From: Anthoceros angustus
Taxonomy: Eukaryota > Plantae > Anthocerotophyta
Length of the DNA stretch: 7,993 nucleotides
Direction of reading: 5' to 3'
Assembly: GCA_010909165.1 (NCBI GenBank)
Contig: VJWM01000432.1
Location: forward strand, 1 to 7,993
Part shown: in pieces, positions 1-7,059 of the stretch
Position numbering within the stretch: the first letter of the stretch is position 1
Layout: each line of letters starts with the position of its first letter
Translations under genes and position numbers: made by a program
Notes under the pieces: model-generated
What the model was told of the DNA's origin: nothing
The model's input: only the letters and a program-made list of their open reading frames with translations
Database searches by the model: none

Positions 1-1184
1 TGCCCATCTCCCAAGAAGCCCTGACGGAAGAGCCAGCTGTGCTGGCTAGCTACTCGCAGGCAGTCCAGTGACATTTTGGAGATTGTGGTCAGCTTGCTCG
101 TCTTTGGAAGAAGGATCTACCTCTGCAAGACTCTGTTTGGGCTACTCAGGGTGGCTTTTGTGCTGGATGCCACCGATGCTTGCAAAAAGCAACTGGAGCT
201 GAAGATTGGGACTCAGTTGATGCGGCCACCCTCGATAATATTCTGGTCCCTTACGCTTCCCCCGCGCAATTGCGCGCCCCTGTATGACGTGGACCTGGTT
301 TTGATTGGTGATTGTTTCCTCAAGGATCGGAGAGGCTTTGTTGGAGGCTTCGCTGGCTGCTGAGAAGAAACAGGAAAATGGGTTCCTTGCTTGGTTGTTC
401 GACACCCATAAGGACAATTCCAGGATGTTGGATGAACATATTGGTCCCTTCGGAGTGCAGAAGGCCTTGTACGCGGTGGGGATCTTTTGACAAATTTGAG
501 TTGAGTGAAATCGCTGCGGATGTGCACCTGAACGCCCCTAAGTTTGAAGCACTTGCTGGAGCACTTCCAGACTTTGCGAGGTGTTGTCATGATGGACTGT
601 ATAGAGCCATCGATATTTATCTCGAGGTAATGTCACTCATTCCATCATCCTGTCAATGCTTCCAACCAGTTCAGACAATCCTGGATGGGAAGTGCCTTTT
701 CATTGTTATGCTCTTGTTGAGACTCTCTGCTGACGACTGTGCTTCCTATGTTTTTGCAGGCGCATCCCAACGTTGATGAGTCCGAAGCAGGTGAGCCTGT
801 GGGGTCCTCAATCACAGAAGCTATCCATGGACACTTGCAAGCATCTTACCAAGAACAAAACTTTCCGCCTTTGCTGAGTTTGCAAGTATTACTGGCACAA
901 CAGATTCAGCTAAGGTCAGCAGTTGCAGCTGTTTACACAAGGAAGAAGAAAAAGGTGGCCTGGGCAACAGTGGACTGGTGGGCAAGATTTTCGATTCTGG
1001 TAACCTTGTTCCCGACGGAGGTGCAGGAGTCCACAGAATGAGAGATGTCTGTCAGCAAAACGACGACTTGAAGCTCAATTTGAGGCAAGTGCAATCCAGG
1101 GTTGATGAGCTGGAGAAGTTGTGCAAGAGAATGCGTCTGGAGATGGCCAAACACACGAAGGCCAGGAGGCGACTTATCTGCTGA
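1..1184 (+). CDS. NPH3/RPT2-like (NRL) family protein, 3' part (NPH3 domain plus C-terminal coiled coil), most like the At3g22104/At3g19850-type subgroup; 5'-truncated by the window; multiple frameshifts; exons <1-626 and 760-1184
   Basis: Stitching frames gives the NPH3-domain motifs in order: DILEIVVSLL, KTLFGLLRVAF..ATDACKKQLELKIGTQL, DAATLDNILVP, LYDVDLV, LSEIAADVHLNAPKFEALAGALPDFARCCHDGLYRAIDIYLE|AHPNVDESE, CGVLNH-KLSMDTCKHLTKN, FPPLLSLQVLLAQQ. A coiled coil QNDDLKLNLRQVQSRVDELEKLCKRMRLEM follows, ending ARRRLIC* (TGA 1182-1184). The phase-0 intron between YLE and AHP is at the position typical of NRL genes. The subgroup call rests on recalled motifs (KHLxxNxxFP), not on a search. Confidence 0.93.
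627..759 (+). other. Spliceosomal intron (133 bp, phase 0) of the NRL gene
   Basis: GAG|GTAATG donor at 627 and TTTTTGCAG|GCG acceptor ending at 759. Removing it joins IDIYLE to AHPN. Confidence 0.9.
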
Positions 1185-1499: not shown

Positions 1500-3163
1500 T
1501 CAGCCTAACTGTTTTAGGTTAACAGTGGTCAGAAGCTGGCATGATGTTGCCCAGGCCAGAAAGGAGCTCATCTCATGCAGACTGCATGGCTGACAAAAGC
1601 AGTGACATTCGCTGGGGAATCTACATCAACGAAAGCGTCTTAATATAGACTCTCTCCTCCATCCAAAGGGATAGGAACGCCTTGGAAGCGCATGAAAGGA
1701 CAAATGCTGGGCTTTAAGGTGCATACATATGTGTAGAGACCTGATGCTGTTCCACTTGCAACCGGAGCCTCGGAAAACCCCCTCGTGCGTGTGACTTTCA
1801 AGAAGTGTCAGGCCATGTGTTGGGATGAAAGGGTCCTGGTTGACTGACAGGTCTACCAGTCTTCATCATCCTGTGGCACCATCTATAAGGAGGACTGTGT
1901 TCGGCAGGCCACTAGTTCAGGAAATGCGTTCTAAGAGTACCTTGGATCAGCAGGCCCCGCCTTGTCATGCTGCAAAATTTCCTCCAATTGCGAGCTGGGT
2001 TGGCATGAAAATCGGTGACCAGTGTGCTTATGAACAGATTCCCAGATTCCACCTCTATGTGGTCGATGGAGTACTACTATGGAGACGACAGCGCTTCCTG
2101 GTGGAAGAGAGAACTTGAAGATGGAGTCAGGCACCTCCATAGAGGAGTGTGATCCGTCAGAAGGTAGGCCCACTGGCAGTTAAAGGAGAGTTCCAAGAAT
2201 GTGCAAGCCAGAGCGTCACCTCAGGCAATCGCATTTGCAGCGTCAGCAGTACGTGATCAGCGTGCACCCATTCTTCTTCTTGTCAGCCAAGCACAGACAA
2301 GCTCCAAACTGGATTGTGTACAAACTTCAAGCTGGAATTGCAGTGTATTGATGAACAAGCTCGCGTTTGATGGTTTGATGGTGACCTGTAGACGCTTCCA
2401 ATGGGAGACAGAAGGCGGAGGTTAGGTCTTCACCTGGATTCTTGTTTCTCTGCACAGTTATCTTTTGAAACACTGCCCTAATAGCTGTCCCTCGCCACCA
2501 GACTTCTAGTTGAGCTGAATAACTACCCATTTCACGTGAACTTGGTCACCAAAGGACATTACTAAAGAGCTGGCGGTGTTCAAAGCATCCTTGAACGATT
2601 TCTCCTCATGGGTCCCGATCCCCTACAGTGCCGACATTCTCCAGGTTTTGAAGCTGGTACAACTCGTTCGTTCAGTCAGCATTCCTTGTATGCAACCAGG
2701 CGAGACTTCTCGTCAACAACGCTGCTGATCAAGGGAAGCAATACAAGTGCTCAATTCCATCTCCACCAAATGTGCACTGCTGAAACGAAAACGCAGCGAG
2801 GTGGACAGTGAAGGGTCGAATCGGTGTTCTTGATCATGAATTTGCAGCATGGATGGCTGAGCTCCTTGCATCATGGCTTTTGGATAGACAACATGCTACT
2901 GGCCAATGCTGGATGCTAGAAGCTGCAGCACCTAGTAGTCTGTGCTTAGCACATACTGCACCGAAGTGAGCAGAGATACAATGTGCAACCATAAGTTATG
3001 CGTGGAATTGGTTTGAGATGAAAGCAGGGGCTGGGGGACGTGCCTACATTGCAAATTACCGGACCAGGTCCGACTCGATGTTGTTTGAGGGCCTGCGGTT
3101 AGATGCTGCAGAGAGGGCTTTGAAGGCCGCGCGCCGCTGACAAATCATAAGTTGAAGTATCAT
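1500..3163 (-). CDS. Putative multi-exon protein-coding gene of unknown function (about 6 exons: ~3163-3060, 2955-2434, 2385-2220, 2172-1941, 1882-1741, 1680-~1500), frameshifted
   Basis: Five candidate GT-AG introns on the minus strand: 3059-2956, 2433-2386, 2219-2173, 1940-1883 and 1740-1681. Most have pyrimidine-rich 3' ends. Protein-like segments lie between them, e.g. RPFTVHLAAFSFQQCTFGGDGIEHLYCFP, LISSVVDEKSRLVAYKEC, THEEKSFKDALNTASSLVMSFGDQVHVKWVVIQLN, EEEWVHADHVLLTLQMRLPE|WAYLLTDHTPLWRCL (in frame across intron 2219-2173), LVDLSVNQDPFIPTHGLTLLES and GVPIPLDGGESLY. Start, stop and several phases are uncertain, and no family is recognised. Confidence 0.55.
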
Positions 3164-3191
3164 GCACCTTATAATTCCTCTGCAGGCGACC

Positions 3192-4540
3192 ATGGCGGGG
3201 GCAGCCAAGAGAGCTGCTAACATAGCCAAAGAGAGAATGGTTGAGCTTGAATACAAATTCACACATCTCCAGTTATGCTCAAAGGCATACCACACAGCCG
3301 CAGAGATCAAGATCCAGAGAAACAGGACGGCCATCAGAGCAGCCAAGATCGAGAATCGGCACATGAGCGTATTGAATGCCCTGTTGGAAGCTGAGCGATG
3401 CAGCTTCAAGAAGCGACATGAACAGGATGATTGAACGAGTGAAGCTACTGCAGAGTTTACGACGAGCAGAAGGATCTGGTAATGAACAAGCAGAATCAAC
3501 TCGAGAGCCAGATCACAGAGGCGAACTGCGCGGACCTTGATTTGAAGGGAATTGAACAGACAGGGGCCCAATCAGTAGGTTTGAGGCGCTCCTTTCATTC
3601 ACAACAAGATCAAGGCATCTCAGGATTTGCGCAAGAGCTACGGGCACAGTGACCTGATGCGAAGACTGCGCTGCATTTGAGCTGCAAATGGCAGCGCTGG
3701 AGACGACTTTGAAGAGAAAAGAGTACCAGCTGACACAGCTCATTCTTGTACTGCGACTCGGAAAGGGCTCGCAATGCATCCAAGATCGAGCTTGATGAGC
3801 TGCTGTTAGGCTACTGCTTCTCAGAGAAGCGGGTGCCCGACACTCGGGCGGAGCAGAAGGAGATGGATGTGGAGATCTCCAAGATCGTCAAAGAGTTCAA
3901 CGAACCGAACATGAGGGAGGTTGTTTTGCAGCCCTGGAGCAGGAGAAGAGGTCGCAGTACTACGCCAAGATGTACAAGGAGTTGATGGAGCTGCAAATGA
4001 ACCCAACACAGCGGAGCAGAGACGGTTGATGAGGAGGAACATCGTGATTCCCAAGTGATGGATGATGATGGGAATCGAGCCCGGTAGCAGGCCTTCTATG
4101 CCGCCACATTGGCGTCCACGGTGTCGCACACTCAGGAGACGATCCACAGGATAGACCGGACGTGGCCTGAAGAGAGCCAGGCACTCCGGGAACCTTATCT
4201 CCATGCTCACCGGCACCAAGCGGCTGGTGGACAAAATTCTGCTCGGGGAATTCTACAGGCGTGGACGAGAACTCAGAGAGTGTTGAGGTGCAAGAGGGCG
4301 CTGGTGGTCCTGCTGAAGGAGGTGTACAACAAGGTGAAAGCGACCAAGGCCGAGAAGGATAAGAGAGATAGTGAGAAGGCACGCGAGGAACGGTACAACC
4401 AGCCGCGGAATTCGACCCTCACCGTGCAGAAATCGAGGCCGAAGTGCACAGTTGGCTCAACCTGCTGAGAAGAGGCACTGGAAATGCAAGAAGGAGGCTT
4501 AGGGCTGAGGCCTTGGCGCCACCACCAACCTGATCAATGA
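3192..4540 (+). CDS. Long coiled-coil protein resembling the CCDC151/ODAD3 (Chlamydomonas ODA10/DC1-type) outer dynein arm docking family; apparently single coding exon; frameshifted
   Basis: ATG at 3192 (accATGGCG). The stitched translation includes ERMVELEYKFTHLQLCSKAYHTAAEIKIQRNRTAIRAAKIENRHM, which fits the recalled family N-terminal pattern ELxxKfxLLxxxxKAY/F...IxxNxxtIxxlkxEN. It also includes ISRFEALL..IHNKIKASQDLRKSY, AAFELQMAALETTLKRKEYQLTQLIL, DSERARNASKIEL and ISKIVKEFNEPNMREVVLQALEQE, collinear with the central coiled coil of that family. The stop is at 4531-4533 or 4538-4540 depending on frame. Coding status is well supported; the family assignment is by eye and coiled coils can mislead. 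Confidence 0.6.
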
Positions 4541-4917: not shown

Positions 4918-6450
4918 CTACAGAAGCTTGGGTCCAGGCTTGCTATTCACAAAGTCCCAGTGCTCGTAAATTCCATTCACGAAGTCGTAATATGCACCGT
5001 GAAGTTGCACACCGCCGTCTTCGAGAGCCTTGGTATGGAATGGGCAAGTAAGCGTTGGCGAGCGACAGATTCACCGCTTCCTGCCACACACAAAACACAA
5101 GGCCAGCGGATGAGAGCTTGTGATGAGGCATCCTGAGCCGTATCATGTCGACTTGCAACTATACTGGTACTGGTACCGGTACCCACCCTTTCTGCGAACC
5201 GCAGCTTTTCGTCCTTGGGAGCATCCTTGAGCCCTCCTCCGTCTTGGTGTAGACGTCGGCAATGTTGGTCCAATCCTCAACAAATTCGTGACTGATGCAC
5301 CAGCAGGCCAAAAGTCAGTGAGAGCAGACCTCTGGCGTTTGAAGCATGGTCAGTCGACTGAGCTGAAAGCAATAGCACTTACTTGCAGTTGGCCTTGCCT
5401 CCTGCGTGTGTAGGAGATTGGCGATGCCCCTACAGCTGTGGTGTCCATTCACTATGATGTGCTGCACCTGGAGATTGATAACAGGATAACAGGAGGAGGG
5501 GAAGGAGGATCAGCAGCAGGACAGAGAGAGTTGCTGACGAGCTTCATCGCATTTGAAGACTGTTCTCACCTTGAGGTGCTTGACAGCGTATTCGAGAGCA
5601 GAACTGACGCTGGGGTATCCGCCCTGCAAAACCCAATCAAAGCCCCGTTTGTGTGTGAGTTGCTAGCAAGGAAGCAGGGGCCAGCTCAGCCAAAATTCTC
5701 ACACCTTCTCGTAAGCGGGAACCAGGTTGGCGACATTGCGGATGACGAAAGCTTCCCCAGGCTCCAGCCCCAGGATGGTGGCAGGGCCACACGGAGTCTG
5801 CGCACGTGATGATCATGAACTGAAGGCAGACAGACAGTACAAACATGTCTTTAGAACATGGGCCGCCCGTATCGTATCGATCGCACAATCAAGAACGTCT
5901 GTAGTATGTACTTGCAGCAGTTTCTCACCTTGGGCCACTGCCCCGTCTTCAAAGTCTGGTACCTGTCCTCCTTCCTGAAAGGACACAGCAACACCGCCAA
6001 GTCCAAGGGCAGCTGATGAGTCACCTTCACCAATGCACCAGTGCTAGCAACACCAGCTCACATCGAATGAAACGGCAGTAACTTTGTACAACAACACGTA
6101 CGAGAACTTCTGTCTTGAACTTGCTGAAGGCCGCCGCCAGGTCCCCAATCGGGTGCTTGATTCGGTTTCCTGCGGGGCCGGGGCAGTCTCCGCTCCAAGC
6201 TTTCAGCAACTGCCAGAAGCTTCTTCGCTGCCACATCCGTAGATGAGGGGCCGCCCTGCATTCCACCCCAACAAATTGCTGAGCTCTGAGACTCCCGCAT
6301 TCCGCCCCACGTGCAACAGCAACAAACCACCTGAGGCATCGCCACCCGCAATCGCACACCACAAATTCAGCGATGGTGGCACTGCAGTGCTTACTTGATG
6401 CGGGAGAAGATGCGGGCCTGAGCGTCGAAGAAGGAGTCGGAGCCCGCCAT
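4918..6450 (-). CDS. BCA: Beta-class carbonic anhydrase (plant type), 8 coding exons: 6450-6395, 6255-6102, 5974-5929, 5819-5705, 5623-5570, 5467-5383, 5291-5187, 5080-4918; several 1-2 nt deletions
   Basis: Spliced, frame-corrected translation: MAGSDSFFDAQARIFSRIK..DVAAKKLLAVAESLE..AFSKFKTEV|KEDRYQTLKTGQWPK|FMIITCADS(R)V(C)PATILGLEPGEAFVIRNVANLVPAYEK|GGYPSVSSALEYAVKHLK|VQHIIVNGHHSCRGI..|HEFVEDW..FAER|EAVNLSLAN(L)LTCPF..LHGAYYDFVNGIYEHW..KLL*. The Zn ligands Cys (5804-5802), His (5443-5441) and Cys (5434-5432) are present. All 7 introns are GT-AG and fall at positions typical of plant beta-CA genes. Confidence 0.96.
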
Positions 6451-6483
6451 TGCCGTAGTAGCGCTGCCCCTGAGCCGCGAAAT

Positions 6484-6918
6484 CTGCGAGAGCCAAACCA
6501 AGATCAGAAGGCGATTTCACACCCCACGACACGACACCGCAGCTGCTGCCGCTCCTGCTCCGACGATCCCTCTAGGTCGGAACATTCCGGATGCGAACAA
6601 CCGGGCTCGGGCACCGCGAAGAGCCCGCACTCAGAGACAAGCAGAAACTGAGGCTGCACCGATTGAAGCCGACGGAACCCATCGGCCATACGGCCGTGGC
6701 TCGGTCAGCCTTCCGTCCGGCAAGACTGCCGTCCCATCAGTCACTCACTCACTACAGTCAGCCAGCCACTCAGTGAAGTCAGGCAGGCACGCAGTCAACA
6801 ACGGCGATGGCAATGCCTGGCTGCGCAAGAGCAGAGGGGAAACGCGGCAGCTCGGAGGCTGGATTTGGAACGCAGCTGGTGCAGCTGGTGCAGCTGGAAT
6901 TGGGTGCAGATGAATCAC
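6484..6918 (-). other. First intron (435 bp) of the beta-CA transcript, in the 5' UTR or leader
   Basis: CCAG|GTGATT donor at 6918 and TTGGCTCTCGCAG| acceptor ending at 6484, 33 nt upstream of the ATG at 6450. Confidence 0.65.
6872..6897. repeat. Tandem 9-mer (GCAGCTGGT) x ~3
   Basis: Directly visible: gcagctggt gcagctggt gcagctgg. Each unit contains the palindrome CAGCTG. Confidence 0.9.
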
Positions 6919-7059
6919 CTGGCGAGGCGAGGGAGGCAGCGCAGCACAGCACAGCTGAGCAGCAAGAGGCAGAGGCAGAGGAAGAGGCAGAAGGCAGAGG
7001 CCTGAGTCACAAGTGAAAGCCAGGGAGGCCGGGTCCTTTTGTCCTGCCAGCCTGTCCAT
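6919..7059 (-). other. Upstream exon of beta-CA: CT-rich 5' UTR, or coding for an N-terminal extension from ATG 7059
   Basis: Pyrimidine-rich Y-patch-like sequence on the minus strand ends at a good donor. The 141 nt from ATG 7059 to the donor are stop-free and in phase with the main ATG after splicing. Confidence 0.5.
6965..7001. repeat. Imperfect (AGAGGC)n hexamer array, CT-rich on the beta-CA sense strand
   Basis: agaggc agaggc agagga agaggc agaaggc agaggc, about 6 units. It reads LPLPLPLP in the putative extension frame. Confidence 0.85.

Follow-up and report, generated by a model that had tools for sequence, protein, structure and literature searches.

A frame-broken coding-like stretch at the locus

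The window analysed here is the whole 7,993-nt stretch of contig VJWM01000432.1. Its + strand carries a coding-like stretch from 3192 to about 4470-4533 that has no single open frame and resembles a family of bryophyte proteins related to ODAD3 (CCDC151), a coiled-coil subunit of the docking complex by which outer dynein arms are anchored in cilia. An earlier note, made from the sequence alone, had described a divergent ODAD3-like protein at this place. All motifs quoted there occur between 3192 and 4540 of the + strand, in the quoted order and far above chance: ELEYKF..KAY..IQRNRTAI..KIEN and IHNKIKASQDLRKSY in frame 3, FELQMAALE in frame 1, and ARNASKIEL and ISKIV..MREVV in frame 2. The coding-like motifs are real, but what had been called a protein is not an open reading frame (ORF) and has to be stitched together over many frame changes.

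Reading this copy (the window copy) requires the frame sequence 3, 1, 2, (1), 3, 1, 2, 1, 3, 2, 3, 2. The segments are listed in Table 1. The pieces of the window were searched one by one, and the read-through is an alignment path only. The ATG at 3192 lies in an ACCATGG context and is aligned with the N-terminus of the bryophyte family. The degenerate core at 3556-3662 is the counterpart of the family-invariant block LDPNTPPL..IR.LE.RL, of which DPNTP is not recognisable in the window. Two stop codons, TGA at 4056 and TAG at 4085, fall between two segments of the copy. The true end of the copy is uncertain, as frame 1 is open as far as 4533, the end taken in the earlier note.

Table 1. Features of the window, with frames and the evidence for each (HMM, hidden Markov model of the bryophyte family; HMM ranges are profile positions)
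Feature	Positions	Strand	Frame	Evidence and remarks
Segment 1	3192-3410	+	3	HMM 4-75, E 2.2e-15; 41-47% identical (tblastn) to proteins of Marchantia, Sphagnum, Ceratodon and Physcomitrium
Segment 2	3412-3456	+	1	frame change near 3411
Segment 3	3458-3553	+	2	HMM 93-122, E 8.5e-5 (frame-2 part); frame change near 3457
Degenerate core	3556-3662	+	1 and 3 (path by eye)	ends with IHNKIKASQDLRKSY; weak HMM match 145-160
FELQMAALE segment	3664-3750	+	1	HMM 168-197, collinear, E 0.17 alone; on alignment path
ARNASKIEL..ISKIV..MREVV segment	3752-3931	+	2	HMM 197-255, E 8.4e-7; tblastn to P0001/P0005
Two segments	3934-3994 and 3996-4055	+	1 and 3	followed by stop TGA 4056; HMM 260-278; alignment path; tblastn P0016 252-268
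Two segments	4088-4283	+	2 from 4088 (by eye, just past TAG 4085); 3 at ~4170-4283	LISMLTGTKRLVDKI in the frame-3 part; HMM 322-346, E 0.003; tblastn P0005 314-338, P0014 305-355
C-terminal segment	4280-4468	+	2	stop 4466-4468; HMM 357-403, E 1.4e-3; path ends at 4384, column 397/409
HMM-matched stop-free segment	3156-3431	+		profile 4-75, E 2.2e-15
HMM-matched stop-free segment	3443-3649	+		profile 93-122, E 8.5e-5
HMM-matched stop-free segment	3585-3677	+		profile 145-160, weak
HMM-matched stop-free segment	3658-3792	+		profile 168-197, E 0.17
HMM-matched stop-free segment	3734-3982	+		profile 197-255, E 8.4e-7
HMM-matched stop-free segment	3799-4026	+		profile 260-278, E 0.46
HMM-matched stop-free segment	4155-4283	+		profile 322-346, E 0.003
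HMM-matched stop-free segment	4088-4465	+		profile 357-403, E 0.0014
NPH3/RPT2-family gene	1-1184	+		intron 618-758; coiled-coil C-terminus; ~7 frame changes in ~1 kb coding (by eye)
Beta-carbonic-anhydrase gene	4918-6456	-		several short introns; at least 4 frame changes within exons; Pfam Pro_CA on four exon pieces

A bryophyte protein family, probably of the ODAD3 branch

With the piece 3192-3431 as query, exhaustive phmmer over 1.84 billion representatives returned two relevant proteins. One of them, P0001, is the Marchantia polymorpha "hypothetical protein" MPTK1_8g01800 (Mp8g01800), with E 3.8e-5 and 44% identity to the piece. The other, P0003, is a UniParc-only sequence close to Physcomitrium proteins that were recovered later. 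P0001 and a four-sequence profile served as queries in word searches that yielded further members. They comprise liverwort proteins (two Marchantia paralogues, Riccia and Calypogeia) and moss proteins (Physcomitrium, Ceratodon and Sphagnum), and two short contigs also carry members; bryophytes usually have two to three paralogues. Only liverwort and moss relatives were found in collections of 1.84 and 5.8 billion proteins. None of 11 members has a Pfam domain, and all members are annotated only as "hypothetical" or are unnamed.

The second Marchantia paralogue (P0012, MPTK1_6g13140 or Mp6g13140; 725 aa) has a C-terminal extension of 325 residues that is absent in the other members. At its start is a charged region rich in Glu, Lys, Arg and Ala, and repeated Ser/Ala/Glu-rich units (AEVSAVAASSSQDESTSQHAAHS-like) follow.

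An HMM was built from the 11 bryophyte members, and with it hmmsearch was run on the stop-free segments of the window in six frames, 325 in all. Eight + strand segments matched in strictly collinear order over 3156-4465, with a best E of 2.2e-15. A frameshift-tolerant alignment of the profile to the DNA covered columns 1-397 of 409 over 3192-4384 with nine frame breaks under a strict penalty. A low frameshift penalty overfitted (19 events), and nine was hence taken as the floor, with 11-12 counted by eye. The score-only version of this aligner gave 202 for the copy, compared with 26.4 ± 3.0 for 20 shuffles (z ~59). The reverse strand and the reversed sequence scored 23-26, and elsewhere in the window the score was 24-28. 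The copy shares 28-31% identity with the bryophyte members overall and 41-47% over the first 80 residues, and all members are about equally distant from it, as would fit a source in a third bryophyte-grade lineage. By these comparisons the window copy is almost certainly a member of the bryophyte family.

Taken alone, the pieces of the window could not be matched to any docking-complex protein by sequence similarity, and the link to ODAD3 is transitive, only via the bryophyte family. Pfam on nine pieces gave nothing relevant, phmmer against the PDB with three pieces gave chance matches only, and Rfam on the window gave nothing. With the piece 3192-3431, an Atlas search returned nothing usable and a word-index protein search, whose length range of 44-140 aa leaves out full-length relatives, was blank.

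The family itself matched known structures. P0001 alone matched Tetrahymena DC1 (7moq_X, 1.3e-9), a kinetoplastid "distal DC1" (9e78_5B, 7.4e-7) and bovine ODAD3 (7rro_H4, 0.0067). The four-sequence profile matched 7moq_X at 5.3e-11, 9e78_5B at 1.9e-10 and mammalian ODAD3 at 7.6e-8, 7.8e-8 and 1.5e-4; the corresponding values for the 11-sequence profile were 8.7e-13, 2.1e-9, and 3.2e-7, 1.3e-6 and 0.012. No ODAD1/CCDC114/DC2 chain was among the PDB matches of the protein or of either profile, even at E ≤ 10. Of 177,635 PDB sequences, the five that the profile matched best are DC1/ODAD3 orthologues without exception (ciliate, kinetoplastid and mammalian), and the next matches are unrelated short helices. 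The alignments between the family and ODAD3 are collinear over ODAD3 residues 64-300 and include the block IR.LE.RL..K...Q....YE, which corresponds in the window to the region around IHNKIKASQDLRKSY. Relevant PDB matches of the family profiles (8.7e-13 to 0.012) are thus confined to DC1/ODAD3 chains, in agreement with the earlier choice of the ODAD3/CCDC151/DC1 branch over the ODAD1/DC2 branch, and the bryophyte family likely belongs to the former. In the Atlas, P0001 falls among clusters that carry PF21773 ODAD1_CC (29 of 30). This placement speaks for the docking coiled-coil superfamily; a point against the branch assignment is that it leaves the ODAD1 and ODAD3 branches unresolved. PF21773 was matched by none of the 11 family members at E ≤ 1.

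A generic coiled-coil resemblance, unrelated to docking-complex proteins, would account for the lack of Pfam and PDB matches of the window pieces alone. It would also fit the Foldseek search of the AlphaFold (AF2) model of the Marchantia protein against the PDB, which was not significant (top two matches, bovine sperm axoneme chains at E 0.12-0.35). The model consists of long helices (2-109, 128-217, 249-283 and 352-399; mean predicted local distance difference test score 70), and a nonsignificant Foldseek result is expected for such folds. The profile searches contradict this explanation, because the best five PDB matches are all DC1/ODAD3, collinear and in the equivalent N-terminal region, and because myosin, SMC and similar proteins are absent from the matches. 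A merely generic resemblance is hardly credible.

Intact multi-exon genes of the family occur in three liverworts and three moss genera. Those of Marchantia, Riccia and Sphagnum have 6-9 exons, and seven intron positions, near residues 25, 104, 172, 215, 288, 346 and 368, are common to liverwort and moss genes. The comparison of nonsynonymous and synonymous change that the earlier note had proposed was made on the Marchantia and Riccia members (385 codons, 84% amino-acid identity). The proportion of nonsynonymous differences (pN) was 0.095 and that of synonymous differences (pS) 0.70, giving pN/pS of about 0.14; the nominal dN/dS was 0.05, with synonymous sites saturated. The low pN relative to pS indicates that the family is under purifying selection. 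Purifying selection is clear at the family level, and these sequence data support the view that the ODAD3-like family is functional and retained in plants. The description "divergent but retained" therefore holds for the family, with its intact intron-bearing genes, but not in the same way for the window copy, which is intronless and frame-broken and keeps 32 of 61 invariant residues.

In Marchantia (L001) and Riccia (L003), the ODAD3-like gene adjoins a Ten1-family (PF15490) gene, and this local synteny is conserved. The neighbours in the window are different (NPH3 and beta-carbonic anhydrase), consistent with a relocated copy.

Assembly noise, introns and the state of the window copy

The two neighbouring genes are broken as well. 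The Pfam NPH3 match is split into positions 63-144 in frame 1 (25-360) and positions 190-232 in frame 3 (312-773), and no intron separates the two parts. In the beta-carbonic-anhydrase gene, one frame change lies inside the zinc-site C-x-D-x-R motif, near 5790-5830. Residues 58-85 of the pea enzyme (1EKJ) align to 5702-5812 on the - strand, and the preceding FMIITCADS is in another frame of the same exon. The frame changes of this gene apparently arose from single-base losses in CCC and GTGTG runs. Just upstream of its start, the region 6746-7001 is GC-rich (~62%) with short tandem repeats: 21-nt units at 6746-6795, three copies of GCAGCTGGT at 6872-6897 and six of AGAGGC at 6965-7001.

The density of breaks was 5-7 per kb in the NPH3 and beta-carbonic-anhydrase genes and 7-9 per kb in the ODAD3-like copy. 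As the neighbours show breaks at comparable density, the most probable cause of those in the copy is noise in the assembly. No homopolymer longer than 5 nt occurs in the 7,993 nt, whereas about six are expected even in random sequence. This homopolymer deficit, alongside genes riddled with indels, points to a long-read assembly that was not polished, or to truncated homopolymers. The 374-codon alignment path contains at most one in-frame stop. Three of 10 frame breaks lie within six columns of an ancestral intron position, with about two expected, which is no more than chance. Probably most of the 9-12 frame breaks, if not all, are indel errors of a noisy assembly. If so, the product of the real gene is probably all-helical and about 430 residues long.

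Several observations weigh against a working gene at this locus. As assembled, there is no intact ORF, and the number of frame changes is at least nine under the strict penalty and 11-12 by eye. All seven introns common to the liverwort and moss orthologues are missing, the coding sequence being continuous at these positions. The copy is 28-31% identical to the bryophyte members, whereas mosses and liverworts share 40-45% with each other. Of 61 family-invariant columns, only 32 are kept, the invariant residues of the family including ARTQNMLLH and LDPNTPPL, and the DPNTPPL core is degraded, although part of this loss adjoins frame breaks and may be noise. The missing introns, the divergence and the degraded core also fit a dead retrocopy.

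Such a processed pseudogene would have arisen from the reverse-transcribed mRNA of an intron-bearing ODAD3-like parent, inserted here and now decaying. Some of the breaks would then be real, and a working gene, if any, would lie elsewhere in the genome. The continuity of the copy at seven of seven conserved intron positions, next to genes that keep their introns, speaks for this origin. The same is true of the higher divergence, of the loss of family-invariant residues (32 of 61 kept, whereas liverworts retain 75-78% of moss-invariant columns) and of the two to three paralogues that bryophytes usually carry. The 9-12 frame breaks also agree with decay but carry little weight, because breaks are equally dense in the neighbours. 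The stop codons argue in the other direction: about seven were estimated from the decay needed for the extra divergence, and the path has at most one. A poly(A) remnant and flanking direct repeats of at least 9 nt were looked for, and none were found. In addition, a plausible acceptor of an intron in the 5' untranslated region directly precedes the ATG. On balance, a pseudogene is an unlikely explanation, and we favour with fair confidence an intronless working gene hidden by noise.

Function of the family and comparison with known systems

In animals and ciliates, a coiled coil of ODAD3/DC1 and ODAD1/DC2 on the A-tubule (protofilaments A7-A8) sets the outer arms every 24 nm. The premise of the earlier note that the motors themselves are missing agrees with the literature, in which no outer-arm heavy chains are reported for any land plant, the hornwort Anthoceros angustus included (PMC9237703). 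According to the same source, hornworts and liverworts are the only land plants with a reported dynein-2 heavy chain. In phylogenetic profiling, CCDC151/ODA10 had been counted as a loss that went with the disappearance of outer arms from land plants, and a 2013 paper stated that no ODA10/CCDC151 orthologue exists in Physcomitrella (PMC3842995). The Physcomitrium members P0010 and P0011 qualify this statement; they are divergent homologues of a kind easily missed by BLAST. No paper naming plant ODAD3-like genes was found in a literature search. The present analysis shows a divergent, unannotated family, assigned to the ODAD3 branch and under purifying selection, in liverworts, mosses and the present genome.

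In sperm flagella, the ODAD3-like protein would pair with an ODAD1/DC2-like protein. As a periodic coiled coil, the two would run along the A-tubule of every doublet and form a scaffold carrying no dynein, and this scaffold without a motor may stabilise or space the doublets. By analogy with the known docking complexes, we put this mechanism forward tentatively, as the reading that needs the fewest assumptions but somewhat more doubtful than probable. A bolder version, that bryophyte sperm axonemes retain a complete ODAD1-ODAD3 docking coiled coil despite the loss of every outer-arm dynein, seems unlikely. If it were true, the docking complex would serve a task that needs no dynein, such as making the doublets stiffer or keeping them spaced, or would carry a non-dynein structure. 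A study of Physcomitrium sperm labels "clear outer dynein arms" in transmission electron microscopy sections (bioRxiv 10.1101/728691), unlike the genome surveys (PMC9237703), and a retained docking complex could then account for some of the outer density labelled in this way.

Two points weigh against a docking role. The bryophyte members are about 400 aa long, compared with 555-675 aa for the solved ODAD3/DC1 proteins, so a part is missing. The Chlamydomonas orthologue of CCDC151, ODA10, is an assembly factor and not a docking subunit (PMC4603930). A functional protein may accordingly serve otherwise than as a docking scaffold: an ODA10-like role in dynein assembly in the cytoplasm or the proximal axoneme may have been redeployed for inner arms, or the protein may be part of a different array of microtubules, for instance the spline in the multilayered structure. 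The behaviour of ODA10, which works in assembly without DC2 binding (PMC4603930), is in line with this idea, as is the absence of about one-third of the ODAD3 length. The ODA10 partner ODA8/LRRC56, however, is reported absent from Physcomitrella and Selaginella (PMC4361367), and the best PDB matches of the family are axoneme-bound docking subunits. A role of this kind is improbable, yet a serious alternative. A further alternative, an ordinary docking subunit in a streptophyte alga or another organism that still has outer dynein arms, is very improbable. Chara and Klebsormidium do keep outer-arm beta and gamma heavy chains (PMC9237703), but only liverwort and moss relatives were found among the billions of proteins searched, and an NPH3-family gene adjoins the copy.

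Taken as a whole, the best explanation is a family member of the ODAD3 branch whose breaks are mostly noise and whose product would form a dynein-free scaffold; for this combination, belief only slightly exceeds doubt. The window copy itself adds little beyond the presence of the family in a third lineage, and it raises the question of whether this lineage uses a retrogene.

The closest structural counterparts are ODAD3 (bovine 7RRO H4 and human 8J07) and Tetrahymena DC1 (7MOQ X). The family profile aligns to residues 64-300 of the bovine protein and 100-231 of the Tetrahymena protein, and the Marchantia model has the same all-helical long coiled-coil architecture. The bryophyte proteins differ in their length of about 400 instead of 555-675 aa, in having no Pfam match and in occurring in lineages reported to be without outer-arm heavy chains, and the window copy differs further in being intronless and not open as assembled. 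ODAD1/CCDC114/DC2 belongs to the same coiled-coil superfamily, as seen from the PF21773 ODAD1_CC domain in the Atlas neighbours of the Marchantia protein. In contrast to ODAD3/DC1, no chain of this branch was matched by the family profile at E ≤ 10, and PF21773 itself was unmatched by the 11 members at E ≤ 1.

Chlamydomonas ODA10, placed in the same orthologous group as CCDC151 in the literature (PMC3842995), is the nearest studied relative in the green lineage. Together with ODA5 and ODA8 it acts in the assembly of outer arms (PMC4603930). Plants, in contrast, are without these arms, and ODA8 is reported absent. The most similar biological situation is found in eel sperm, which have lost the outer arms while keeping the docking complex, including CCDC151, and the 24-nm structure at A7-A8 (bioRxiv 10.1101/2023.07.16.549168). 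The eel, however, is an animal whose genome still encodes outer-arm dyneins for other cilia. Bryophyte genomes lack outer-arm heavy chains, and retention of the ODAD3-like family is therefore not explicable by use in another cell type. The presence of the family and the selection on it suggest that in bryophytes, as in eel sperm, the docking scaffold may have outlived the motor that it docks.

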